A program made the translations under genes and the position numbers. This document shows positions 2,413 through 63,770 of a DNA stretch of 64,000 nt, piece by piece (the stretch's first letter is position 1; each line of letters starts with the position of its first letter). Under the pieces are notes generated by a model. It did not search any database. It was not told where the DNA came from and was given only the letters and a program-made list of their open reading frames with translations. The stretch lies in sequence record NC_019401.1. One strand, given 5' to 3'.

Positions 2413-2724
2413 ATGTCTAATCAAATTTGCTACGTTATTGTTAATCAAGCTTGGCCTGAATGGGTTAAAATAGGATTTACTTCAAAAGAAGAAATGAAAA
2501 CTCGTTTGAGTACATATCAAACTGGTTCTCCGTTTAGAGACTATGAAGTTTATCATGAAGTGTATTTTGAAGATGCAAAAGCTGCTGAAAAAGAAGTTAA
2601 TAAAAGATTGAAGCAGATGAATGCAACTCAAGGTACTGGTAAAGAGTGGTATAAAATGCCAAAGAAACTAGCTGCTAATATGATTGATGCGGTTCTGGAT
2701 GATTTGGAAGAAGGATTACTCTAA
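2413..2724 (+). CDS. T5orf172/GIY-YIG-like domain protein
   Basis: CYVIVNQAWPEWVKIGFT...RLSTYQTGSPFRDY...EKEV...GKEWY pattern. Confidence 0.8.
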   Translation: MSNQICYVIVNQAWPEWVKIGFTSKEEMKTRLSTYQTGSPFRDYEVYHEVYFEDAKAAEKEVNKRLKQMNATQGTGKEWYKMPKKLAANMIDAVLDDLEEGLL

Positions 2725-2727
2725 AAC

Positions 2728-2734
2728 ATAAATA
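2728..2734 (+). promoter_or_regulatory. T4-like late promoter (ATAAATA)
   Basis: Lies just upstream of the tail-fibre gene; same motif precedes many virion genes. Confidence 0.55.
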
Positions 2735-2768
2735 TCTCTATAATATATAAACGTGAGGACTGATTTAT

Positions 2769-4388
2769 ATGAGTATAAGATTTAATCATGCTACCAATAC
2801 AATGACTAGCACGAATTCTGCTTCTATAGTCGTAGAAGGTGGAACACCTAGTGTTCCACGTCCTTTGAGACTGAATGCTTCTTCGGTTGTTTTTCCGAAT
2901 AAAGCATTACCAACAGGTGAAGCTGGTGCAGTAGTTTTCGATACTGCATCAAAAACATTAAAATACCATGATGGTTTCCAATGGGTGGAATTATTATCAC
3001 AAGATGAAATACTTGAACCAATTCAAATTTCACTAACTGAAATTTATAACCAATTAGCTAACCGTGTTAGTTCTGTGACATATAGTTCTAGTGCAGTTCC
3101 AAGTGCAAGTGTTAGTGGAACTAACTTAAATATCGTTTTCCCAACAAGTTCTGGAGGCAGTGGGGCCGCCGTTCCTGGCTTGTTTACTTCATCACCTCCC
3201 GGAAGTATAATGCATTATTCTTTAACTTCTGGACAATCAGTAGCAAGTATTCGAGAACAAATGAGCGGAGTTAGTGGTGGACAAAATGGTAGAAATGGTA
3301 CAGTTAGTGCACCTTTTGTAACTAAAACTGGTTGGTGTTTTGCAGATGGTATGTACTGGACATGGAATGGTTCAGATGGTGCAGTAACTAAAGTTGTACC
3401 GAACTTGAACCAAGAAGCTTACTTGAAAGGTATTACCACAAGTGGTGTAACAAAAACTGATGCTATTATAACAGGTTCAGGAACTATCAGTTCAACCTCA
3501 ATCACAATGCCTGAACACTATCACGGTACTGGTATGATGCGTGGCTTAGGTGGAGATCACGGTGATGATGGTGTATTCATTATTGGTAAAACTTGGAATG
3601 ATGGTCGTACCTATACTGGTGCAATCATTACTGGTGATAAACAACAATATTGGACAACTGCTGCTGACGGCTCTGACACTCGTCGTGCTTTCACAACAAC
3701 TTATCCAATTTACCAAAGTGGTAATACTTCAACACATACCCATAACTTAACGGGTATTGATGTTGGACATTTTAACGTTGCAGTACTGTACAATATTGCA
3801 GAACCAAGCTTAGCATTGAATCAAGCCAATGGTGATGCTCGCTATGTGTTAAAATCCGGTGATGTTATGAGTGGTTCATTAACTATTGCCAACAGTGCAG
3901 CCATTCAAGCTAATGATACTAACTTAATATTATGGTTCCGTAATGCTAGTGGTGGTGAACGTGGAGCTATCTATCATAGTACTACAACTAACACCTTACG
4001 ATTCCGTAGTGCTGGTGGCACAGAAATGGCATTGTCCAACACTGGCGTATTAACTGTAGCTGGATTGACAGTATCAAGCCAAGGAGCTACGGTCGGTGGA
4101 CGTAATATTGTTAGATCAATTAATGGGTCAACTGCTGATGCTAATGGTAATGTAACATTGAGTATTACCGGTGGTGTAGTAACGAACGTTCGCCGTGGTG
4201 CAGAAATTGCAGTTAACCGTTATTCGTTAGGTGATGAATCATTTGTTTATCGTTGTGGCGAAGGCCAGTATGTAACTGGTTTCAATATTTGGTCAAAAAG
4301 TAATAATAATGATGAATTCCGTGATATGTATTCTAGACCTGTACAAATTCTAATTGATGGAACGTGGAGAACTATTTCTGATGTTTAA
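2769..4388 (+). CDS. Tail fibre protein with collar-like domain
   Basis: Gly/Ser/Thr-rich; collar-like PPGSIMHY...GWCFADG...VPNLN; HYH and HTH metal-type motifs; fibre-tip C-terminus ...YSRPVQILIDGTWRTI; followed by a chaperone. Confidence 0.8.
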   Translation: MSIRFNHATNTMTSTNSASIVVEGGTPSVPRPLRLNASSVVFPNKALPTGEAGAVVFDTASKTLKYHDGFQWVELLSQDEILEPIQISLTEIYNQLANRVSSVTYSSSAVPSASVSGTNLNIVFPTSSGGSGAAVPGLFTSSPPGSIMHYSLTSGQSVASIREQMSGVSGGQNGRNGTVSAPFVTKTGWCFADGMYWTWNGSDGAVTKVVPNLNQEAYLKGITTSGVTKTDAIITGSGTISSTSITMPEHYHGTGMMRGLGGDHGDDGVFIIGKTWNDGRTYTGAIITGDKQQYWTTAADGSDTRRAFTTTYPIYQSGNTSTHTHNLTGIDVGHFNVAVLYNIAEPSLALNQANGDARYVLKSGDVMSGSLTIANSAAIQANDTNLILWFRNASGGERGAIYHSTTTNTLRFRSAGGTEMALSNTGVLTVAGLTVSSQGATVGGRNIVRSINGSTADANGNVTLSITGGVVTNVRRGAEIAVNRYSLGDESFVYRCGEGQYVTGFNIWSKSNNNDEFRDMYSRPVQILIDGTWRTISDV

Positions 4389-4794
4389 AAGATATGAAAA
4401 GGTTGGTGGATACACCAACGTTCAGTACTGGAAAGATGAAAATGGTACTGATTGGTATGATTATGCAGATAATGCATCATTGGACAATATGAAAGTACTA
4501 GTTGATGTAAATAACATTGTTGTGGGGTTTCACAAAGATGCAACCACATTAGTACCCAATGAAGCAACATTATATGAAGTGCCTTTTGATGAGATTCCAA
4601 AAGATCTACAACTTGTTAAGTACTCTTATGATGGTGAAAAATTCTATTTGACTGAGTTTAAAGAAAAATCAGAAAGCATTGATGACATTAAGAACCAATT
4701 GTTCATGCTAATGTTGAAAAGTAAGCTTAGTGCTGAAGAAAAGAAAACTTTCGAAGAACTCAAGGTACGTCTTGAAGAAAAACTATCGAAATAA
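4381..4794 (+). CDS. Tail fibre assembly chaperone (Tfa-like)
   Basis: WKDENGTDWYD...KVLVDVNNIVVGFHKDATTLVP resembles P2/lambda Tfa N-terminal domain; ATG 4381 overlaps the fibre stop. Confidence 0.75.
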   Translation: MFKRYEKVGGYTNVQYWKDENGTDWYDYADNASLDNMKVLVDVNNIVVGFHKDATTLVPNEATLYEVPFDEIPKDLQLVKYSYDGEKFYLTEFKEKSESIDDIKNQLFMLMLKSKLSAEEKKTFEELKVRLEEKLSK

Positions 4795-4795
4795 A

Positions 4796-4824
4796 TGAAA
4801 CGCAGAAAAAACATCTGATATAAT
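4796..4824 (+). promoter_or_regulatory. Conserved phage promoter TGAAAC-N17-TATAAT
   Basis: TGAAACGCAGAAAAAACATCTGATATAAT upstream of dsbA-like gene and polymerase. Confidence 0.85.
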
Positions 4825-4828
4825 GTAG

Positions 4829-4860
4829 GCATCCTAGCGGAGAGTTAGGGTGCTTTTTTT
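4829..4860 (+). terminator. Terminator-like hairpin
   Basis: GCATCCTAGC-GGAGA-GTTAGGGTGC (10 bp with 2 G-U) followed by T7. Confidence 0.7.
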
Positions 4861-4880
4861 ATACATGGAGAAATGAAAAA

Positions 4881-5183
4881 ATGGCTAAGAAGACTGAATC
4901 TAAAATTGAAGCACATGAGCTAAATGACGTACAACGTAAAAAACTCAAAGACGGCTTGAATTCCGCAGTAGTCCAACTAACCCACCTAGACACACTAAAA
5001 GAATCTTACGCTGATTTCATGGATACTCTAGCTGATGAACTTGGTTTAGACAAAGCTAAACTAAAATCTGCTGCAATGCGTATCTATAAACAAGATTTCT
5101 TTGATAAAGTTCGTGCACAAGACGAAGTAGAAACTATTCTAACAGTTTCTGGTAATCTTGCACAAATGGAAGATGACGAATAA
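4881..5183 (+). CDS. T4 DsbA-like dsDNA-binding protein
   Basis: ADELGLDKAKLKSAAMRIYKQDF...EVETIL parallels T4 DsbA AKDELGVDGKMFNRLLALYHKD...EVVELY. Confidence 0.65.
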   Translation: MAKKTESKIEAHELNDVQRKKLKDGLNSAVVQLTHLDTLKESYADFMDTLADELGLDKAKLKSAAMRIYKQDFFDKVRAQDEVETILTVSGNLAQMEDDE

Positions 5184-5188
5184 TTAAA

Positions 5189-5212
5189 TAATGCCCCTTA
5201 ATTGGGGCATTA
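5189..5212 (+). terminator. Hairpin between dsbA-like gene and polymerase
   Basis: TAATGCCCC-TTAATT-GGGGCATTA perfect stem, followed by AT-rich run. Confidence 0.6.
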
Positions 5213-5244: not shown

Positions 5245-8200
5245 ATGTACGTAGATGGATATATGGATAGGAAAAAGACTGGTGAAGTACTTCACGTAGC
5301 TGAACGTGTTAATGGTCAGCGTATTTTGCGTGAAATTGAACCAGTATATGAGTACTATGTAGAGTCTCCGCGAGGTGAATACAAAACTATCAATGGTACT
5401 TTAGCTGAGAAGTTTGAATTTACCCGTTTTTCAGAAATGAAACGACAAATGGATGCATTGCCAAGTACTGCTAAGATTTATGAAGCAGATTGTAATGTAA
5501 CATTTAAAACATTAGCTAAACACTATATGGGTAAGTCATCTCCTGATCTTAATATCGTTTTCTTCGATATTGAAACAGACTTTCACCCTAAATTCGGATA
5601 TGCTCAACCAAGCGACCCGTTTAACCGTGTAACTGCTATTTCATTATATCAAAGCTGGACTGGTAAGGATTATGTTCTTACAATGGCTCCAGTAGATATG
5701 CCAATTTACGAAGCTCAGGACATTATCAATCGTTTGAATGATGAAACGAATGATCCTAACAGCGTTGTAATTCTTTACACTGAAGAAACTGAAATGTTTG
5801 AAACTTTCTTTGAGTTAATTGAAGATAGTGACGTACTTTCAGGCTGGAACAGTGAATTCTTTGATATTCCATACATGGTTAACCGAACCAGAAAGATCTT
5901 TAACGAAGCTACATTAGCTCGTTGGTGTTTATGGAATAAAAAACCAAACGCTCGCGAAGCAGATATGTTTGGTAAAACCATTGTTACCTATGATCTGGTT
6001 GGACGTGTTCATTTAGATTATCTTGCATTGTATAAAAAACATGCTGGTCAAGTAGAACAATCATATAAACTAGACTATATCGCTGAAAAAGTAACTGGTG
6101 AAAACAAAGTATCATATGATGGTTCATTGGACAAATTGTATCGTGAAGATTATGAAACATTTCTACGATATTCTAAGCAGGATAGCATCCTACTAAAGAA
6201 AATCGATGAAAAAATGGACTTTATCAACCTACACAACCGATTAGCACACAAAGAATGCGTACTAATCAGTACTACAATGGGTTCAGTAGCACTAATCGAC
6301 ACCGCAATCATTAACCTTGCACATCAACGTGGTGAAGTAGTATTCAATAAACGTAAACTTGATGATGATGAACAAGATTTTGAGTATCAAGACTACGAAA
6401 TTGACATGGATGATGATGAAGACGATGAAGTACAGGCAGGTTCGAAAGCTGCTGGTGCTTGGGTACAAGATCCAGTACTAGGTTTGATTGATTTCTTGGG
6501 TTGTGTTGACTTTAACTCACTATATCCAACTGTACTCCGTACATTAGGTATGAGTACTGAATGTATTCTCGGTCAGCTTCGTCAGACATATACTGATAAG
6601 TATTTGGCTGATAAAATCGAAGAACAGAGAGTTAAATGGGCTAGAAATGGTGGTCGTGGTAAATTTGAACCAAAATGGACTGAAGCATGGCATGGTTTGT
6701 TTGCTAGTGTTGAATTTACAATGGTTCGTGAGAAATCACAAGAAGTAATTACCGTTGATCTAGAAGATGGCACATCATTTGAAGCAACTGGTGCTGAACT
6801 TTATGATATTATCTTCGGTGAAGATAGTACTATTGTACTAAGTGCTAACGGAACATTATTTGATAAGACTAAGTACGGTGTAATTCCAGAAATTCTTACA
6901 ATGTGGTATTCTGAACGTAAAGCACAACAGAAAATGGTCATCGACTATAAACATTTGGCAACAGATGGTTGGGAAATTCCAGAAGAAGCAGTTCAAGCTA
7001 TCGAAAAAGAACTACAGTCGCTATCTTTCGGTACTGGAATCTATAAAACAAACTTACATGAAGATGATCCAATCTATCAGATGCGTTTAGCACTTGGTAA
7101 AAATGATTATGCTCAAATGGCAAAACTTATCGCTGATAATGGTATGCGTATTGAAGATAATCATATTTTCGTAGCTGATTCTGATAAAAAGTATTGTAAA
7201 ACACAATCTGCTTTCTGGAAACAGAACCAACAGATCCGTAAGATTCTTCTAAACTCACTATATGGTGCGTTGTTGAACAAAGGTTCTCGCTTCTTTGATA
7301 AACGTCTAGGTCAATCAGTTACATTAACTGGTCGTAGTATGACTAAGCACCTAGCAAGTAAAATTAATGAAGTTTGCACTGAAACTTACGATCATAGTGG
7401 TGGTGTGGTAGTATATGGTGATACTGACTCAGTATATTTCAGTGTTGCACACTACTATAAAGAGAATGACATTCCGTTTGAAATGTCAAAAGATGAAGTT
7501 GTTGAACTTTATCAAATGATTGGTGATACCGTAGGTGCATCTTTCCCTGAATTTATGGATAAAACCTTTAATACTGGTATTGAAAAGGGTAAAATCGTGG
7601 GTGCAGACTTAGAAATGGTCGGTTCTCGTGGTCTATTCTTGAAGAAAAAGCGTTATGCTATTCTAAAATATTGGGAAGATGGATTCCGTTTAGATGTGGA
7701 TGGTAAACCTGGTAAAATTAAAGCAATGGGTCTTGAAATTAAACGTTCAGATACACCAAAATACATTCAAAACTTCCTAGAAGAAACGTTGATTGCATTA
7801 CTTATTGGTGAAACCGAAGAAGAATTACGTGCTCGTGTACGTGCATTCAAGAAAGAGTTTAAAGATAAGCCTAGTGTAGAGAAAGGATCGCCAAAAACAG
7901 TAAAAAATTACACCAACAAAGAAAAAGAATATCAGGATACTGGTAAATGTTCTGTTGGACACGTGTTGGCGGCTATACAATGGAACAAACTTCGTGAATT
8001 AAACGATGATAAATCAGTTCCAGAAGCTACTGACGGTACTAAAGTCATTGTATGTGACCTAAAACCAAATCCATTAGGCATCAAAAAGATTGGATATCCA
8101 ATAGATTGTGCTGATTATCTACCAGAATGGTATCTAGAACTTCCATTTGATGATGATACAATGGAAAAAGCTGTATTAACTAAGAAATTAGGTAATATTT

Positions 8201-8277
8201 TCGGTATTTTGGATATGGATATTGGTATTGATGAGAAAAGTACAATTGAATTGAACACTGGCTTCTTTGATTGGTAA
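5245..8277 (+). CDS. gp43: Family B DNA polymerase (gp43-like)
   Basis: ExoI DIETD, ExoII GWNSEFFDIPY, ExoIII YSKQD; polymerase motifs DFNSLYP, KILLNSLYG, YGDTDS, KKRY. Confidence 0.97.
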   Translation: MYVDGYMDRKKTGEVLHVAERVNGQRILREIEPVYEYYVESPRGEYKTINGTLAEKFEFTRFSEMKRQMDALPSTAKIYEADCNVTFKTLAKHYMGKSSPDLNIVFFDIETDFHPKFGYAQPSDPFNRVTAISLYQSWTGKDYVLTMAPVDMPIYEAQDIINRLNDETNDPNSVVILYTEETEMFETFFELIEDSDVLSGWNSEFFDIPYMVNRTRKIFNEATLARWCLWNKKPNAREADMFGKTIVTYDLVGRVHLDYLALYKKHAGQVEQSYKLDYIAEKVTGENKVSYDGSLDKLYREDYETFLRYSKQDSILLKKIDEKMDFINLHNRLAHKECVLISTTMGSVALIDTAIINLAHQRGEVVFNKRKLDDDEQDFEYQDYEIDMDDDEDDEVQAGSKAAGAWVQDPVLGLIDFLGCVDFNSLYPTVLRTLGMSTECILGQLRQTYTDKYLADKIEEQRVKWARNGGRGKFEPKWTEAWHGLFASVEFTMVREKSQEVITVDLEDGTSFEATGAELYDIIFGEDSTIVLSANGTLFDKTKYGVIPEILTMWYSERKAQQKMVIDYKHLATDGWEIPEEAVQAIEKELQSLSFGTGIYKTNLHEDDPIYQMRLALGKNDYAQMAKLIADNGMRIEDNHIFVADSDKKYCKTQSAFWKQNQQIRKILLNSLYGALLNKGSRFFDKRLGQSVTLTGRSMTKHLASKINEVCTETYDHSGGVVVYGDTDSVYFSVAHYYKENDIPFEMSKDEVVELYQMIGDTVGASFPEFMDKTFNTGIEKGKIVGADLEMVGSRGLFLKKKRYAILKYWEDGFRLDVDGKPGKIKAMGLEIKRSDTPKYIQNFLEETLIALLIGETEEELRARVRAFKKEFKDKPSVEKGSPKTVKNYTNKEKEYQDTGKCSVGHVLAAIQWNKLRELNDDKSVPEATDGTKVIVCDLKPNPLGIKKIGYPIDCADYLPEWYLELPFDDDTMEKAVLTKKLGNIFGILDMDIGIDEKSTIELNTGFFDW

Positions 8278-21154: not shown

Positions 21155-22063
21155 ATGCCAAAAAAATTAACGCCTGAAGAATTTTCCAAAAAGTCAAATG
21201 ATAAGTTTGGTGATAAATTTAAAATAATTACAGAATATGTTTCTTATGAAAAAAATATTATAATTTCCTGCAAAGAACATGGAAATTTTAACACAACCCC
21301 AAAAATACACTTAAAAGGTGCAGGTGGTTGTCCGAAATGTTCTGGTAATACTAAACAAACAACTGAAAATTTCATAGAACGATCAAAAAAGATTTATGGT
21401 GATACGTTTAACTACACGAACACAAATTACACAGGCATTAACAATAAAGTGATAATTACATGTAAAATACATGGTGATTTTGAACAATTTGTTAAACCTC
21501 ACCTTAATGGTTCTGGCTGCACAAAATGTTCAGGTAGAGCTAAACACACAACTGAGTCGTTTATTGAAGCATCTGTTAAGAAACATGGGAATGTATACGA
21601 TTATTCCAAAACCGCATATGGTAAAAATAATAAACAACAAGTTACAATAATATGTCCCACTCATGGTGAATTTGAACAGATTCCTAATAGTCATCTTTCT
21701 GGTAAAGGATGTGTTAAATGCTCAAATGAAGCATTATATTCTAAAGCAGTAAATGAAATTCTTAATTATTTTAAACAACATGATATAGAATATGAATTAG
21801 AAAAAACTTTTCCCGATTGTAAAAATATATTATCGCTTCGATATGATTTTTATATTCCATCAATCAATACTTGTATTGAATACGATGGACTACAGCATTT
21901 TGAAAGTTGTGGTTGGGGTGGAGAAGACAAATTAAAATTAACACAAGAAAATGATAAAATTAAAAATGAGTATTGTGAAAATAATAATATAGGTTTAGTT
22001 CGTATAAAATACAACGAAGACCACATTAAAATATTAAAAAGGATATTTAATGACAGAGCTTGA
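21155..22063 (+). mobile_element. Free-standing putative homing endonuclease (CxxHG Zn-repeats + PD-(D/E)xK/Vsr-like nuclease)
   Basis: Three C-x2-HG-x-F...HL-x-G-x-GC-x-KC repeats; C-terminal LRYDFYIPSINTCIEYDGLQH; more AT-rich codon usage than its neighbours. Confidence 0.75.
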
Positions 22064-22918: not shown

Positions 22919-24403
22919 ATGAGTGGAACTTGTAAGTTAATACTTCAGGACGAAGTAAACTGTAAATTTGAGGGGCTTGCCCCTAATATTCGTCAAGAAA
23001 TGATTCGTAAAGTGTCATATACTTTACCATATGCACGATATACACCTGCTGGTCGTATGGGTCGTTGGGATGGAAAAGTAAACTTTATGAACATTGGTGG
23101 TAGTACTTACTATCATATGTTAGACCAGCTACTACCAATTCTTGAAAAGCATGATGTGATGATTGAAATTGACGATCAACGCATTCAGCATAATTTTGAA
23201 TTCGAAGCAATCGATGAGAATATTTTTGATTACGTCGAATTCCCACCTGGTCACCACATGGAAGGAAAAAAGATTGTCCTTCGTGAACACCAAGTGAATG
23301 CAGTAAACACTTGCCTACAAAATCCACATGGATTATTATTGGCAAGTACTTCATCTGGTAAAACACTAATTACCGCAGCAATGTCCAAATCTGTTGAAAA
23401 ATATGGTCGTAGTATTGTAATTGTTCCTAACAAAGACCTTGTTCAGCAAACATACAATGACTATGAAATGGTTGGATTAGATGCTGGTGTGTTTTACGGT
23501 GATAAGAAAGAATTAAACCATCAACATACAATTACTACTTGGCAATCACTAAACTCTTTGTGGAAGAAAACAAAGAAAGGTGAATTAGATTTAACTGAAC
23601 AGGACGTTCATGATTTTATCAACGGTGTAATCGCGGTCATTGTGGATGAAGCACACACCAGTGCTGCTGAAGCACTACACGCAGTACTTGGACAAGTAAT
23701 GAAAAATATCCCATTACGTTGGGGGCTAACTGGTACTATTCCAAAAGATCCAGTACTTGCAGCTAAAATAAAATGTAATGTTGGTGATATAATTTATACA
23801 ATCACTGCAAAAGAGTTGCAAGATAAAAAGATTCTCAGTACTTGTAACGTGAATTGTATCAGATTAAAAAGTTCTCTAAAATTCTCAAACTATCAGGAAG
23901 AATTAAAATATCTCGTTACTGATAGGGATCGAATGAGTTATGTTGCAACTTTGATTAGTGCAATAGCTGAAAGTGGTAACACATTAGTACTTGTAGATAG
24001 ATTAGAAGCGGGTGAATTACTTTGTGAGTACTTAGGTATTCCAAAATCAGAATTCGTTCGTGGTGATACTAAGAAGAAAGATCGTGAGGCATCATACGGT
24101 GAAATACGTTGGGCTGACAATAAGATTCTAATTGCAACTTATGGTGTTGCAAGTACAGGTATCAGTATTAGTCGTTTATATAATGTAGTACTAATTGAAC
24201 CAGGAAAAAGTTTTGTACGTACAATTCAAAGCATAGGACGTGGGCTTCGCCGAGCAGAAGATAAAGACCACGTAGAGATTTATGATATTTCAGGTTCTAA
24301 TAAGTATAGTGCTAAGCATATGCGTGAACGGATAGCTTACTATAATGAGGTTCAATATCCATATGTCGAGATGATTGTGGAAGATTGGCAAAATATGGAA
24401 TGA
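22919..24403 (+). CDS. uvsW: SF2 DNA helicase (UvsW-like)
   Basis: LREHQ, STSSGKT, VDEAH, GLTGT, QSIGRGLR. Confidence 0.92.
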   Translation: MSGTCKLILQDEVNCKFEGLAPNIRQEMIRKVSYTLPYARYTPAGRMGRWDGKVNFMNIGGSTYYHMLDQLLPILEKHDVMIEIDDQRIQHNFEFEAIDENIFDYVEFPPGHHMEGKKIVLREHQVNAVNTCLQNPHGLLLASTSSGKTLITAAMSKSVEKYGRSIVIVPNKDLVQQTYNDYEMVGLDAGVFYGDKKELNHQHTITTWQSLNSLWKKTKKGELDLTEQDVHDFINGVIAVIVDEAHTSAAEALHAVLGQVMKNIPLRWGLTGTIPKDPVLAAKIKCNVGDIIYTITAKELQDKKILSTCNVNCIRLKSSLKFSNYQEELKYLVTDRDRMSYVATLISAIAESGNTLVLVDRLEAGELLCEYLGIPKSEFVRGDTKKKDREASYGEIRWADNKILIATYGVASTGISISRLYNVVLIEPGKSFVRTIQSIGRGLRRAEDKDHVEIYDISGSNKYSAKHMRERIAYYNEVQYPYVEMIVEDWQNME

Positions 24404-26961: not shown

Positions 26962-27308
26962 AACATGGAATGTATTCAGACAATAATAATGACCAACATT
27001 TTGAAGAAAAAACTAATGCACTTAAAAGTATTGCAGAATCTAAACTATCAATGATTCAACGTGGATCAGTGACAGAAATTACAATGGGTGACAGAACGTT
27101 TCAAGTTACAGATCCTAAAAGATTAGAACAAATGATTTCAGTACTGAAACATCAAGAAGAATCAATTCAGGTATTGAGAACCAAAATTAAAGAACATCAT
27201 AATGCGATTAGTGTTTTAGTTCAAGAAGTACAAACATTAAAGAATGAAGTTCAGAGATTGAAGGAAATAACTAATGGATATGGATCACAAGAATTCACAA
27301 ACTATTAA
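26958..27308 (+). CDS. Hypothetical coiled-coil protein
   Basis: Heptad-like C-terminal half. Confidence 0.6.
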   Translation: MKHGMYSDNNNDQHFEEKTNALKSIAESKLSMIQRGSVTEITMGDRTFQVTDPKRLEQMISVLKHQEESIQVLRTKIKEHHNAISVLVQEVQTLKNEVQRLKEITNGYGSQEFTNY

Positions 27309-27924
27309 TTATCGTAAAGCAAGGACTGATATTGATATTGACTTCAAAGATGGAAAGTCAGTTATTGAACAGTTGCCTTGTACAAGAAGTGTGGAAAGAA
27401 TTACTGAGGATGGGCTAGTGCCACATAATAGTGGGGTTCATTTTGATAATATCCCTGTTGACCCTATTAGTGGTTTAGCAAGCATACCATACAAAGAAGC
27501 CGAAAGATTAGGATACCAAAAAGTTGATATACTGTCTCAATCGGCTTACGAACATGTTCGGGATAGGGAACACTTAAAAGAATTAATGAACAAAGAGCCT
27601 GATTGGGATCTATTATTAGTACCGGAATTCGTCGAAGAACTGTCACAAATCAAAAAGCATATAACATTACTTAATGTATGGCGACCACGTAGTATAGATG
27701 AATTAGCAATGTTTATTGCGATGATCCGTCCTGGAAAGCGTCAATGTCAGAGTATGAATAGTTGGGATGAGGTGCGAGCAGTTATTTGGGATTATGATAG
27801 TATTGGGCTAGATGGTGAAGGTAAAAAGTTAAGATACTTTAAAAAGCCTCACGCTTATGCATATAGTTTGATGATAGTTGTTCAGTTGAACGCATTGGTG
27901 GAATATATTATTTCTTCTTCTTGA
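27274..27924 (+). CDS. DnaE/PolC (family C polymerase)-like palm/fingers fragment
   Basis: TDIDIDF, HNSGVHF, KVDILS, AMIRPG, FKKPHAYAY match DnaE PDFDVDF, HAGGVVI, KFDFLG, ALFRPG, FNKSHSAAY. Confidence 0.85.
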   Translation: MDMDHKNSQTINYRKARTDIDIDFKDGKSVIEQLPCTRSVERITEDGLVPHNSGVHFDNIPVDPISGLASIPYKEAERLGYQKVDILSQSAYEHVRDREHLKELMNKEPDWDLLLVPEFVEELSQIKKHITLLNVWRPRSIDELAMFIAMIRPGKRQCQSMNSWDEVRAVIWDYDSIGLDGEGKKLRYFKKPHAYAYSLMIVVQLNALVEYIISSS

Positions 27925-28261
27925 GAGCAACATTCCTGCGTTTAATACGTTTAGTCGGTAGATCACTTAACGAAATCACTGGCCCAGAGTGAACTTTCAC
28001 TTGGTCAGTATTGAATCGTTTTGTATACGATTCAAATTTTTCCATTTCTTCTTGCATAAAAAGGCAAATAGGAATGGTTCGATTACTTTGCCACCACCAG
28101 TTATTGGCTAGTAGTAACAGTTCTTCTTGAAGGGATTCATCCATCTCTTGGAAGCAGTACAATGTCATGTATTGTTTACTTTTGATTTTGATAATCCCAT
28201 AATAGATAATCTCGTCGTGCTCTATGACTGTCACGAACGGATAAGTTTTGTATTCATTCAT
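27908..28261 (-). CDS. Hypothetical protein
   Basis: ORF with late promoter on the minus strand at 28301..28308. Confidence 0.7.
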   Translation of the reverse strand: MNEYKTYPFVTVIEHDEIIYYGIIKIKSKQYMTLYCFQEMDESLQEELLLLANNWWWQSNRTIPICLFMQEEMEKFESYTKRFNTDQVKVHSGPVISLSDLPTKRIKRRNVALKKKK

Positions 28262-28270
28262 AGGACTTCC

Positions 28271-28308
28271 ATAAATATTGTATAAAATGATTATATATCT
28301 TATTTATA
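28271..28308. promoter_or_regulatory. Two overlapping, oppositely oriented late promoters
   Basis: ATAAATA on + (28271..28277) and TATAAATA on - (28301..28308) between divergent genes. Confidence 0.5.
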
Positions 28309-29352: not shown

Positions 29353-30399
29353 ATGATGAATCAGATACAAAATATTATGGCAAATATTATGCATGACCCT
29401 GTTCCAATTATGGATCGCTGGAACCAACATAATTGCCCTGCTTGTATTACAAGAGGACAGTCCAGACCAGACACAAAAGGTCGTGGAAACCATATGTTTA
29501 GGAATGATGGTTCGGTGGTTTATAATTGTTTCAACTGCCACTTAAAAACAGTATGGACACCAGGAAGGTACATTAGCAGAGATATGGAATCTTTGCTTCG
29601 TTCCTTTGGTGCTTCTGATAAAGAAATGATTTCTATCAAACTCATTGCTAAAGAAATGGCAGAGAGTGGTGAATATGAAATTGAAGAAAGTACTCATTCT
29701 AAACTTTATCAAAAAATAGTAACACGTGAATTACCAAGTGATGCACGACCATTTATTGAATGGGTGAATATGGAAAACATACCACCCGATTTCATTAAGG
29801 TCATCAATGCAGTAAACGACCGTAATCCATACTTGTTGGACTTAGATCTGTACTGGAGTCCTTCAAAAGAATTCTACATGTTCCAACGGTTCATCATTCC
29901 GTATTACATGAATGGTCAAATTATTGGTTATACTGCTCGTCACATTGATCCTAAAAGTGAATACCGCTATAGGAATCAAGTTAGTACGAGCATTTTTTAT
30001 AACTTTGATTTACTAAATGATGAAAGGATTCAAACAATCCTTGTCGCAGAAGGCCCAATTGATGCAAGTCTTATGGGTGGTATTTCTGCAAACAACTACT
30101 TTCTAAGTAATTCGCAACTGGATTTGTTGCATAAAGCTGAAGAACGTGGTAAAAACATTGTTATTGTTCCAGACCGAGATAAAGATGGTTTAGTTACAAT
30201 AGAACAAGCAATTGAGCATGGTTTCAGTGTAGCATTACCTGATTACGGTGCAGTACGTGATGAAAATGGAATTCGTCACATTAAGGATTTTGATGAAGCA
30301 TGTGCTAAGTACGGTAGGTTGTTTTGCTTACAACTTCTACATAAAAGCATATACACAGATAGATTCGACATTAGAGTACAAACTGAAAAATGGATTTGA
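29353..30399 (+). CDS. gp61: DNA primase (gp61-like)
   Basis: Zn-binding CPAC...CFNC; TOPRIM AEGPIDA, VPDRDKDG, KDFDE. Confidence 0.88.
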   Translation: MMNQIQNIMANIMHDPVPIMDRWNQHNCPACITRGQSRPDTKGRGNHMFRNDGSVVYNCFNCHLKTVWTPGRYISRDMESLLRSFGASDKEMISIKLIAKEMAESGEYEIEESTHSKLYQKIVTRELPSDARPFIEWVNMENIPPDFIKVINAVNDRNPYLLDLDLYWSPSKEFYMFQRFIIPYYMNGQIIGYTARHIDPKSEYRYRNQVSTSIFYNFDLLNDERIQTILVAEGPIDASLMGGISANNYFLSNSQLDLLHKAEERGKNIVIVPDRDKDGLVTIEQAIEHGFSVALPDYGAVRDENGIRHIKDFDEACAKYGRLFCLQLLHKSIYTDRFDIRVQTEKWI

Positions 30400-30406
30400 G
30401 GTTTAA

Positions 30407-31909
30407 ATGGCAAGCAACACGGACGTAAGAAAATATGACATTAGTTATCAACTATATTTGCTATCGCAAATTTTTAGTACACCAGACCTATATGTAAGGT
30501 GTAAGAACGTACTAAAACCAGATTATTTTGATAAGGAATATCACGCTAGTATCCAATATGTTCATGACTATTCAAGTAAGTATAATATAACTCCAACGTT
30601 AAATGACATTAAACACAATGCCGATTTTCAGTACAGCGAAACTCCAGTACAGGAGTTAAATCAGCAAGCAGTACTTGATAGCGTTGGTGAGTTTTGCCGC
30701 CATAAAGCCCTTGCTCTGGCAATTCAACAGGGTATGGAACTGGTTAACCAGAAACGATATGGTGGCATCGAAGAATTAATTCGAGAAGCAATGCTTGTAA
30801 CTGTTCAGAACGATTTGGGTCTAGACATTTATGAAAATCCAGAGGAAGTTATCAGTTCCCTAGCAAATATGCAAGGTACTTTTAAATCTGGTTGGGAAAC
30901 GCTTGATTATAAACTATTCGGTGGTTTTGGTCGTCAAGAACTTGAGATCTTTGCGGCAGCATCCGGTGGTGGTAAATCAGTTGTTTTACAAAATTTAGCA
31001 GTAAACTTTAGTAAAGCTGGGTTAAATGGTGCTTATATCACACTAGAACTAGCATCTGAGCTTGTTGCCGTTCGTATCTATGGTATGATGGTAAACACTG
31101 CACAGAACAAAGTGAAAGTCGATATTGATGAAACCGCAGCAAAAATTAAAATTGAAGAACGTAGTAACGGTAAACTTCGTATTCACCGTCTACCAGAATC
31201 AGTCAGTACTGTAAACGATATTGAAAGCTATATTCGTGAACTACAGATTAAAACTGGCGTTAAACTCGATTATGTATGTGTTGACTATTTGGATCTACTA
31301 ACATCTGACCGTTGTGGACCGAATGATAAATCTAACGCATTCGTAAAAGATAAATTTGTATCAGAAGAATTACGTGCACTTGCAATGAAAATGGATTTAA
31401 CTGTATTCACCGCTTGTCAGTTTAACCGTAGTGGTGTTGCTGGCGAAGATGTTAAGAGCCAAGCACAAATCGCGGGTGGTATTTCAAAAATCTATACCGC
31501 AGATAACGTTATCTATATTGATGCACGTAAAGACCGTGGCGAAATGGTCTTCGACTTCCAGAAAACACGTAACAGTTCCGCAGTTGGTTCCCGTCTAATT
31601 ATGTCTTATGACATTGATTCACTTCGTGTGCTTGACCATCCACAAACTGTTCAAGAAATGGAAATTAACACTACATTCAGACACAGTGGAAAAGTGATGC
31701 TAGGTAAAGGTAACGTCATGGCTCATCCAACCTTACCAGGTAATTCGGCAATGAGTTCATTACAAAATAAACTTACAAATGTTATTCCTAAGCCTAGTAC
31801 ACAAATTGCACAAAATAGTGACAGTACTGAATCGCCAGATATAAATACACCAAAGGCTGATGAGGATAAAGTTTCCCGTATGCGGGACTTTTTGAATGGT
31901 AGGATATAA
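30407..31909 (+). CDS. gp41: Replicative DnaB-like helicase (gp41-like)
   Basis: AASGGGKS, YITLE, VDYLDL, TACQFNR, QKTRN. Confidence 0.92.
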   Translation: MASNTDVRKYDISYQLYLLSQIFSTPDLYVRCKNVLKPDYFDKEYHASIQYVHDYSSKYNITPTLNDIKHNADFQYSETPVQELNQQAVLDSVGEFCRHKALALAIQQGMELVNQKRYGGIEELIREAMLVTVQNDLGLDIYENPEEVISSLANMQGTFKSGWETLDYKLFGGFGRQELEIFAAASGGGKSVVLQNLAVNFSKAGLNGAYITLELASELVAVRIYGMMVNTAQNKVKVDIDETAAKIKIEERSNGKLRIHRLPESVSTVNDIESYIRELQIKTGVKLDYVCVDYLDLLTSDRCGPNDKSNAFVKDKFVSEELRALAMKMDLTVFTACQFNRSGVAGEDVKSQAQIAGGISKIYTADNVIYIDARKDRGEMVFDFQKTRNSSAVGSRLIMSYDIDSLRVLDHPQTVQEMEINTTFRHSGKVMLGKGNVMAHPTLPGNSAMSSLQNKLTNVIPKPSTQIAQNSDSTESPDINTPKADEDKVSRMRDFLNGRI

Positions 31910-60940: not shown

Positions 60941-61246
60941 ATGTTCCATCCGTTTTTTGATCCTTCATCGTTAAGTAATCAGGAACTTCATGACAAAATA
61001 AATGAAGTTTCAATGCGTATTGCATCGGCACGTGCTGCTGGTATACAATACGAAGTTATACAATCGATGTTTACTTTGATTCAATGCTGTGAAGAAGAAT
61101 TGCGTACTCGCCAAGCTAAAGTAGATTTGGCTGAGATACAGAAAGAAAATAACAATTGTGTATTTGATTCGGATAGTTATAACAACTCAACAGATGATAA
61201 GAAAAATGAAGGTACAAGGAAACAGAACTATAAGCCAGGATGGTGA
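60941..61246 (+). CDS. Hypothetical coiled-coil protein
   Basis: ORF with AGGAGG RBS. Confidence 0.7.
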   Translation: MFHPFFDPSSLSNQELHDKINEVSMRIASARAAGIQYEVIQSMFTLIQCCEEELRTRQAKVDLAEIQKENNNCVFDSDSYNNSTDDKKNEGTRKQNYKPGW

Positions 61247-61724
61247 TGTTCGTTTAGATCTGAATGCCGTGGTTTATGCTATAAACTGCGGTGCAGATAT
61301 AACTTACATTCAACTGAATGAGCAAGATGAAGCTGAACGTTTGAAGTTCAACGACAACTGTAAAAAGTTCGGATTAGAAGAACGTATGCTAGATTATACC
61401 ATAGAACATGATAAAAATCATGAATTGTGGCGTTATGATCCTGTATATGACAAAATCAATCTCGAAGACTATTTTCTTAATTTGTGTAGTACTGATGAAC
61501 AGCGTGACCGAGTACTATATGAATTAAGTCTGTTCGAAAACTACAACATGACAAAACTACTACGTTGTATGATATGGCTAGTGGATTATCTCGAAGAACA
61601 TAATATTTTTTGGGGATTAGGTCGTGGAAGTTCAGTGAGCAGCTACTGTTTGTATTTGATTGGATTACACTTGGTTGATTCTATTAAATACGATTTAGAT
61701 GTTAACGAATTTTTGAAATGGTAA
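61206..61724 (+). CDS. DnaE/PolC-like N-terminal palm fragment
   Basis: RVLYELSLF...GLGRGSSVSSYCLYLIGLHLVDSIKYDLDVNEFL matches DnaE RLETELQVI...[34 protein letters not shown]. Confidence 0.85.
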   Translation: MKVQGNRTISQDGDVRLDLNAVVYAINCGADITYIQLNEQDEAERLKFNDNCKKFGLEERMLDYTIEHDKNHELWRYDPVYDKINLEDYFLNLCSTDEQRDRVLYELSLFENYNMTKLLRCMIWLVDYLEEHNIFWGLGRGSSVSSYCLYLIGLHLVDSIKYDLDVNEFLKW

Positions 61725-62813: not shown

Positions 62814-63770
62814 ATGACCACCACTCTATGGACTGAGAAATATCGCCCAAATGGTATTGAAGACTATGTGTTTAAAAACCCAGCGTTTAAGCTAAAAATG
62901 GAAGAATGGATCAGAACTGGTCAGATTCCACATATTGGGTTCTTCGGACCAGCAGGTACGGGTAAAACTTCAGCTATCAAAGTACTAATCAATGGGTTAG
63001 TGGAAAATGGTTTTGTTGACCCATCTGATGTAACAATTCTTAACATGTCAGATGAAGGTATGGATGCAGTACGTGAAAAGATTGATGCTGCTGCACGACT
63101 TTCAGCATTTGGTGACTACCGCATTTTTGTTCTTGAAGAAATGGAACAAATGGGTATCAAGGCACAAGGTTCACTAAAACGTATCATGGAAGATTATCAC
63201 GAGAATGCTCGTTTTATTCTTACATCAAATGAACCACACAAAATTCTCAAACCAATTATCTCTCGTGTACAATCAATTATGATTGAAAAACACGATCCAG
63301 ATGATTTTACTACTCGCATCATTGAAATTCTAGTCAATGAAGGTGTAGAGCTAGATTCAGAAGAAAGTCTAGATCTAGTTGATAAGTATATTAAATGTAC
63401 TTTTCCTGATTTCCGTAAAACATTGAACACTCTCCAGAGTTCAGTTGTTGATGGTAAATTAGTCAAGCTAGAAGACTCAATTGATAGTACTGCAAGTTAT
63501 CGAGCAGCTATTATTGAAGCACTAGAAGCAGGAAACATCCGTCAAATGCGTGAACAAATTGTACAGAATATTCCTGAAGATGAAATCGATGGTTTCTTCT
63601 CATTCTTGTACCGCAATGTTGATATGTTCACAAAAGATGAAATTAAAGAAATGAAGATCAAAGTTAAGATTCGCGATGCAGTAGTTAAGCAAGCATCGGT
63701 TTCTGACCGTGAGATGAACCTATCTGCACTTCTTTGTGAAGTGGATTTGATCTGCAACGACCAAATGTAA
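62814..63770 (+). CDS. gp44: Clamp loader large subunit (gp44/RFC-like AAA+)
   Basis: WTEKYRP, GPAGTGKT, LEEME, SRV, PDFRK. Confidence 0.93.
   Translation: MTTTLWTEKYRPNGIEDYVFKNPAFKLKMEEWIRTGQIPHIGFFGPAGTGKTSAIKVLINGLVENGFVDPSDVTILNMSDEGMDAVREKIDAAARLSAFGDYRIFVLEEMEQMGIKAQGSLKRIMEDYHENARFILTSNEPHKILKPIISRVQSIMIEKHDPDDFTTRIIEILVNEGVELDSEESLDLVDKYIKCTFPDFRKTLNTLQSSVVDGKLVKLEDSIDSTASYRAAIIEALEAGNIRQMREQIVQNIPEDEIDGFFSFLYRNVDMFTKDEIKEMKIKVKIRDAVVKQASVSDREMNLSALLCEVDLICNDQM

Follow-up and report, generated by a model that had tools for sequence, protein, structure and literature searches.

Two distant genes of Cronobacter phage vB_CsaM_GAP32 for a probable two-chain mini DNA polymerase III alpha subunit

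Two genes of Cronobacter phage vB_CsaM_GAP32, GAP32_323 and GAP32_282, very probably encode the two subunits of one minimal family-C catalytic core, a reduced form of the alpha subunit of bacterial DNA polymerase III (Pol III). We analysed them in a window of 64,000 nucleotides, which megablast aligned at 100% identity with bases 186001-250000 of the genome (NC_019401 / JN882285; genome coordinate = window coordinate + 186000); positions below are window positions and are collected in Table 1. The genes lie on the same strand, 33.9 kb apart, and the one coding for the C-terminal half (C-half, GAP32_282) is upstream of that coding for the N-terminal half (N-half, GAP32_323). The best explanation overall, in which we place moderate confidence, is that the pair forms a two-chain mini Pol III, a DNA polymerase working beside the family-B enzyme of the phage. 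A preliminary description of this DNA, made from its sequence, had proposed a split DnaE-like pair in which a C-terminal half with all three catalytic Asp residues starts where the other open reading frame (ORF) stops. The alignments described below agree with this proposal, and both ORFs, of 216 and 172 residues, are real genes.

Each half resembles a distinct part of Pol III alpha

The N-half is recognized from its own sequence. It matches Pfam DNA_pol3_alpha (PF07733) with E 7e-9 and 36.1 bits, for a cut-off of 23.9, over profile positions 20-95 of 260. A profile made from 40 homologues was aligned by hhalign on residues 320-396 of Escherichia coli DnaE (probability 91%, E 1e-6), and the same profile retrieved Pol III alpha chains only from the whole Protein Data Bank (PDB).

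For the C-half, a profile of 40 sequences searched against the whole PDB also retrieved only Pol III alpha. The best match was Mycobacterium tuberculosis DnaE1, on which the profile is laid out in four collinear pieces, including those aligned with PDIDIDF (412-424), with the block going from KxD to RPG (568-665) and with FNKSHAAGY (765-787). In an hhalign alignment to E. coli DnaE 545-642, KVDIL falls on KFDFL and IRPGK on FRPGP. The Pfam fingers profile PF17657 gave a weak match in 21 of the 40 C-half homologues, one of them above the cut-off. In addition, the AlphaFold2 (AF2) model of the C-half has a predicted local distance difference test score (pLDDT) of 92, and its 11 best PDB matches by Foldseek are without exception Pol III alpha, from Thermus, Mycobacterium and E. 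coli, 7 of them at probability 0.97-1.0.

The motifs quoted in the preliminary description are all present in the C-half, namely DIDIDF (residues 19-24), KVDIL (83-87), IRPGK (151-155) and KKPH (190-193). In E. coli, the first residue is 401 for DFDVDF, 553 for KFDFLG, 639 for RPGP and 757 for NKSH (to 760); residue equivalences are given in Table 1. The active site of Pol III alpha from E. coli is composed of D401, D403 and D555, and H760, invariant in Pol III alpha, is a proposed steric gate (PMC8485763). The phage pair therefore has in common with bacterial Pol III alpha (DnaE1) and PolC (PDB 2hnh, 2hpi, 3e0d, 4iqj, 5lew, 7pu7 and 3f2c) a core fold of palm and fingers, and an active-site set made of the GRGS loop and the equivalents of D401, D403, D555, K553, RPG and H760.

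At the junction, the N-half ends with EFLKW opposite E. coli ...FERFL(392), and the C-half takes over at a point 18 residues ahead of the first Asp of DxDxD. The two ORFs are therefore exactly complementary. Together they total about 390 residues in two chains, the size expected at the outset for the rebuilt enzyme, whereas E. coli-type Pol III alpha is a single chain of 1160 residues.

The mechanical ORF of the N-half opens at a GTG at 61158; since all homologues begin with MKVQGNR, which corresponds to the ATG at 61206, the latter was retained as the start. GAP32_323 is annotated 'DNA polymerase III alpha subunit'. GAP32_282 is a 'putative membrane protein' (one transmembrane segment) in GenBank and a 'DNA polymerase' in RefSeq. 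The membrane label is also found on orthologues of GAP32_282, and the predicted segment is the long hydrophobic fingers helix, residues 191-215/216 (27844..27924); judging from the model, this prediction is most likely a false positive due to that helix.

The active-site residues and the pairing of the halves are conserved

We examined residue conservation in homologues of both halves, down to approximately 30% identity for the C-half. D19, K83 and D85 are found in 219/219 C-half sequences, D21 in 218/219, D23 in 216/219, the Arg of the RPG motif (R152) in 217/219 and H193 in 216/219. As H193 is the equivalent of the steric gate, its maintenance favours the use of deoxynucleoside triphosphates (dNTPs). 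On the N-half side, R140 is kept in 124/125 homologues, and G141, S142, S146 and F169 in all 125. From these counts, the active-site residues of both halves are under strong purifying selection. One metagenomic C-half (P0092) carries a Val in place of D21, the D403 equivalent (MPDIVIDF); this protein could be inactive, or the change could be a sequencing error.

The two halves were also found together. By tblastn, 96 phage records contained the C-half and 95 the N-half, the genus profile being the same for both. Several metagenome contigs, identical in length in the two sets of matches (for example those of 112300, 143009, 85682, 80038, 87999 and 52514 bp), bear both halves. Conservation of the catalytic Asp residues and co-occurrence across genomes, the checks called for in the preliminary description, both came out in favour of the pair. 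Alishewanella phage Slickus01 (141.6 kb) was at first in the C-half list only; a whole-genome profile search then gave an N-half 11 kb away (E 1.6e-16). Because this non-jumbo phage carries both halves, the pair is not confined to phages above 200 kb. In the Slickus01 record (OQ508957.1) the halves are at 68346..68957 and 79796..80308, and the family-B polymerase (2558..5196) is annotated as two adjacent ORFs.

The two genes are separated by as little as 4.8 kb (in RsoM2USA) and by as much as about 224 kb (in Phosso). RaK2-like phages, to which GAP32 itself belongs, have both halves at 76-77% identity to those of GAP32. Phages of the RaK2-like, PA5oct-like, Atu_ph07-like and related T4-type groups, which without exception have a family-B replicase as well, possess the pair as a conserved part of their core.

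Natural fusions join the two halves in either order

A scan of 1.84 billion representative proteins gave almost only standalone C-halves of about 190-215 residues, with three kinds of exception. The first are metagenomic collinear fusions of 375-376 residues (P0335, P0391 and P0392; contig L003, 519-1649). The second is a shorter collinear fusion of 336 residues, also metagenomic (P0324), and the third a circularly permuted fusion of 398 residues, in which the C-half precedes the N-half (P0377; L004, 871-2067). The two subdomains can thus be joined in either order. In a tree of the C-half region, the fusions form three well-separated lineages among split relatives. P0324 and P0377 are devoid of the first 70-95 residues of the N-half, and this segment consequently lies outside the minimal core.

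In P0335, a single Pfam DNA_pol3_alpha match spans the junction (residues 97-207, profile positions 12-121). This protein was folded from a block alignment (A5) composed of three close fusions and the nearest N-halves and C-halves. A joint MAFFT alignment (A3) of two fusions with both kinds of halves was discarded, as the halves were misaligned onto each other. The AF2 model of P0335 has a pLDDT of 94.4 and a predicted template modelling score of 0.91; only a 10-residue linker (181-190) is lower (pLDDT 66). Compared to the PDB, it gave 16 significant matches, all DnaE or PolC (E 5e-8 to 3e-4, template modelling score 0.45-0.58), the next match being at E 1.8. With a viral structure library, the significant matches were full-length phage DnaE proteins and one standalone N-half. 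The N part of the model is essentially helical, the beta-sheet being located in the C part, so that the break falls in a flexible loop at the surface, between two subdomains.

The mini enzyme is reduced to palm and short fingers

The preliminary description had anticipated the absence of an intact PHP domain, of most of the thumb and of the clamp-binding and OB domains, and this is what Pfam searches and motif spacings indicate. No PHP match (PF02811) was obtained in either half, and only approximately 95 residues precede the palm match of the N-half. The DxD-to-KxD spacing is 64 residues in the phage versus 152 in E. coli, so that the thumb is essentially gone. Similarly, the fingers are shortened, since RPG and KSH are separated by 38 residues versus 118. 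After KSH there remain 27 residues, compared to 404 in E. coli, with no distal fingers and no clamp-binding, OB or tau-binding region. The phage enzyme thus departs from the full-length DnaE architecture, in which PHP, thumb, complete fingers, clamp-binding, OB and tau-binding regions are carried by one polypeptide.

The N-half provides the helical subdomain with the GRGSS triphosphate-binding loop. The C-half provides the beta-sheet carboxylates D19, D21 and D85 together with K83, the RPG-K motif and the fingers helix bearing K190 and H193. The active site would then be assembled from two chains in a non-covalent heterodimer, neither half being active alone. In the absence of thumb and clamp-binding region, such an enzyme would be of low intrinsic processivity and dependent on partners.

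Both genes belong to replication modules

Each half has its own conserved neighbourhood. The C-half module, composed of the C-half, a convergent small ORF, a protein of 125-323 residues, the primase and the helicase, has the same order in GAP32, Atu_ph07, Ettore (PA5oct-like) and Slickus01. The N-half module, in which the N-half is followed by two or three small ORFs and the clamp loader, is kept in GAP32, Cassandra and Atu_ph07. Both orders are retained in phages whose halves are only 35-42% identical. In addition, the fused gene of metagenome contig L003 occupies the C-half locus, and the permuted fusion P0377 adjoins a primase/helicase-like AAA_25 gene.

Function of the two-chain enzyme and alternative explanations

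It is reasonably probable, from conserved residues and predicted structures, that the pair functions as a DNA-templated, dNTP-using polymerase in the phage replisome. Templated use of dNTPs is favoured by the conserved steric-gate His together with a structural likeness exclusively to replicative family-C enzymes, and work inside the replisome is suggested by genes adjoining those for the primase-helicase and the clamp loader. There, the enzyme might extend primers of the neighbouring primase-helicase before hand-off, fill gaps or take part in repair.

Several points weigh against this account. The C-half of GAP32, taken as a single sequence, has no meaningful match in Pfam or the PDB, and profiles and structure prediction were required; from sequence alone, the similarity to DnaE is weak, at E 3e-3 to 7e-3. 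The two-chain complex of GAP32 is deduced from a natural fusion that is 30-50% identical and from models of single chains. The grip on primer-template DNA is hard to explain for an enzyme that has no thumb, no clamp-binding motif and no OB domain. The shared neighbourhoods with replication genes may be due in part to the overall conservation of genomes in this clade of phages. Scans for sigma-70 promoters and terminators around both genes stayed at chance level, giving no support for co-expression. Finally, no later paper than the 2021 computational description cited below, and no biochemical or genetic work on any member of the split enzyme, was found in the literature.

A more specific version of the polymerase reading is a dedicated primosome-coupled enzyme, which would take primers from the adjacent primase-helicase, or restart synthesis and fill gaps, and hand over to the family-B replicase. 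We regard this as possible but doubtful. If true, these phages would be natural hybrids, combining a family-C core of bacterial type with a family-B replisome of archaeo-eukaryotic type.

Alternatively, the two-subunit enzyme could be real but non-templated, performing tailing, modification of DNA ends or bases, or synthesis or alteration of nucleotide signals against host defence. The elements that hold a duplex (thumb, clamp-binding and OB) are absent. As already remarked in the preliminary description, the phage encodes a full family-B replicase and a primase. This replicase has its own exonuclease domain. The Pol-beta-like nucleotidyltransferase fold moreover serves many non-polymerase enzymes (PMC11646218). 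However, Foldseek returned family-C polymerases only and no CD-NTase, CCA-adding or other nucleotidyltransferase, and the residues contacting the dNTP or its sugar (RPG, K190 and H193) are as conserved as the catalytic Asp residues. Both genes lie in replication modules and not in variable defence or counter-defence islands, and the pair belongs to a stable core gene set, its distribution not being patchy. We therefore hold the non-templated alternative to be unlikely, and on this evidence prefer a DNA polymerase linked to the replisome to a function in signalling or against defence.

It is also conceivable that the halves act independently, for instance with the C-half alone as the enzyme and the N-half as a regulator or decoy binding host or phage replisome proteins. 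The genes are indeed 4.8 to 224 kb apart, in different modules, and the first 75-95 residues of the N-half, which are phage-specific and missing in two of the fusions, might form an interaction module of their own. Yet the triphosphate-binding loop GRGSS is found in the N-half only, where it is invariant, co-occurrence is strict (Slickus01 included), three natural fusions arose independently, and the fused form is modelled confidently as a single globule. Independence of the halves is thus very improbable.

Decaying remnants of a captured bacterial dnaE, or chains joined by a split intein, hardly deserve consideration. In favour of the former is the paper on sister phage CBB, in which the N-half was named a 'truncated' Pol III alpha, and of the latter the well-known intein-split DnaE of cyanobacteria; but in hundreds of homologues, to approximately 30% identity, the active-site residues are retained and the ends unchanged, and in all split members the break point is fixed, N-halves extending at most 17 residues past the FLK motif and C-halves starting at most 19 residues ahead of the first Asp. 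These flanks are too short for inteins and carry no intein junction motif, in line with the lack of visible split-intein termini noted initially. Both readings were rejected on the basis of active-site conservation and short flanks at the break.

Relation to known family-C enzymes

For jumbo phages of group 2.2, section 3.4.1 and Fig. 3b of Iyer, Anantharaman, Krishnan, Burroughs and Aravind (2021, Viruses 13:63; PMC7824862) describe a minimal Pol III alpha that is split. According to these passages, it is made of two proteins from distant genes, the N part being the NTP-binding and the C part the Mg2+/template-binding subdomain. The pair accompanies a family-B polymerase, with no other Pol III domains, and the authors suggest that it cooperates with this polymerase, either to synthesize one strand or for repair. 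The GAP32 pair is the same entity: its genes are 33.9 kb apart, each half has the same motif content and a family-B polymerase is encoded in this T4-like jumbo phage. GAP32 is unnamed in the main text of that article. The split enzyme of GAP32 is thus already known since 2021, its structural reading having been reached independently in the passages cited. Relative to these, the fused and permuted forms, module microsynteny, the 141-kb phage, residue counts and the high-confidence single-chain model are additional. Earlier genome papers, including that on CBB, had noted only the N-half.

Several other systems can be compared. In the cyanobacterial intein-split DnaE, the catalytic subunit likewise comes from two distant genes, but the phage halves have no intein sequences and must associate non-covalently. 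The cyanobacterial break point probably also differs from the phage one. Bacillus subtilis-type DnaE3 is an accessory family-C polymerase working beside the main replicase. It offers a functional analogy only, as a second family-C enzyme beside a different main replicase: DnaE3 is one full-length polypeptide that includes PHP and clamp-binding regions, whereas the phage enzyme, known from sequence and models, has two chains without them. A role in primer extension would fit the conserved position of the C-half gene beside the primase-helicase. The error-prone polymerases DnaE2/ImuC, like the phage enzyme, have a family-C palm without a working intrinsic proofreader, and by analogy translesion synthesis by the mini enzyme is conceivable. 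DnaE2 is however full length and tied to its ImuA/ImuB partners (PMC12926913). Near the two phage halves no such partner was noticed, although no search aimed at them was made.

If an active DNA polymerase once reconstituted, the pair would define the smallest catalytic core for the family of bacterial replicases, one third or so the size of DnaE, informative for the evolution of family-C polymerases and for enzyme engineering, within a replisome combining a family-B main enzyme with a family-C helper. It is conserved in nearly a hundred sequenced phages, including therapy candidates against E. coli, Klebsiella, Salmonella and Pseudomonas. The discovery value is small, given the computational description of 2021, but the object is unusual and experimentally tractable.

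Neighbouring genes and other observations

The gp41-, gp44- and UvsW-like genes are all inside the window (Table 1). The family-B polymerase is the presumed main replicase; a gp43 homologue has been reported in sister phage CBB.

Table 1. Coordinates of the split polymerase genes, their key codons and neighbouring genes in the window
Feature	Position	Strand	Basis
Family-B DNA polymerase, 1010 aa, exonuclease and polymerase domains	5245..8277	+	PF00136 E 1e-22, PF03104 E 1.5e-20
DnaQ/ExoX-like 3'-5' exonuclease, GAP32_275, 281 aa	22050..22895	+	Pfam RNase_T E 1e-21
UvsW-like helicase	22919..24403		
Probable C-terminal subunit of split mini Pol III alpha, GAP32_282, 216 aa	27274..27924	+	phrog_11778 E 2.6e-108, AF2, Foldseek, profile vs PDB, hhalign
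Codons D19-I-D21-I-D23 (= E. coli D401/D403/D405; D19 and D21, catalytic pair)	27328..27342	+	
Codons K83-V-D85 (= E. coli K553/D555; D85, third catalytic Asp)	27520..27528	+	hhalign, KVDIL on KFDFL
Codon H193 (= E. coli H760, proposed steric gate against ribonucleotides)	27850..27852	+	FKKPHAYAY aligned to M. tuberculosis DnaE1 FNKSHAAGY
Convergent small ORF GAP32_283, 117 aa (3' end overlaps C-half gene)	27908..28261	-	phrog_11637
Primase	29353..30399	+	annotation
DnaB-like helicase	30407..31909	+	annotation, Pfam DnaB_C
Probable N-terminal subunit of split mini Pol III alpha, GAP32_323, 172 aa	61206..61724	+	PF07733 E 7e-9, phrog_11127 E 1.5e-87, hhalign, profile vs PDB
Codons G139-R-G-S-S143 (GRGS loop = E. 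coli G361-S364)	61620..61634	+	
gp44-like clamp-loader subunit	62814..63770	+	Pfam AAA, DNA_pol3_delta2, Gp44_lid

The convergent ORF GAP32_283 contains the motif WWWxSxRxIPI and a tail, KRIKRR, that is basic. In five distant genomes, the C-half or fused gene is adjoined by a convergent ORF of 108-132 residues, the 3' ends overlapping by 9-26 nt (outside GAP32: L007 5548-5907, L008 5596-5994, L009 6470-6796 and L003 1641-2000). It is homologous in four of the five, with GAP32_283 homologues at this place in Atu_ph07, in Ettore (PA5oct-like) and in the metagenome contig L003; the ORF of Slickus01 (108 residues) has no detectable similarity to GAP32_283. A T4-late-promoter-like (T)ATAAATA is present 26-47 nt upstream of the convergent ORF in 5/5 genomes, the GAP32 copy being at 28301..28308 (-). 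Across the window as a whole, TATAAATA is not enriched, with 7 occurrences for 8.8 expected. Antisense transcripts could enter the C-half gene late, from the GAP32_283 side. GAP32_283 was considered as a third subunit of the polymerase; this is unsupported, and the conserved late-promoter-like motif points to a late gene.

The exonuclease GAP32_275 has a C-terminal extension of approximately 100 residues and is encoded 4.4 kb upstream of the C-half. It is a possible, unproven proofreader in trans for the mini Pol III. As a dedicated proofreading partner it is not supported: no tight link could be shown, and it is more widely distributed than the split polymerase, numerous small phages without kinship having relatives. 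An HNH endonuclease gene, GAP32_274 (21155..22063), lies directly upstream of the gene for the exonuclease, within the replication gene block.

Two 'Pol III alpha' proteins of 466 and 569 residues are recorded for Pseudomonas phage PA5 (BFVD A0A1J0MHX4 and A0A1J0MHX0), which suggests that phage DnaE genes are split at other positions too.

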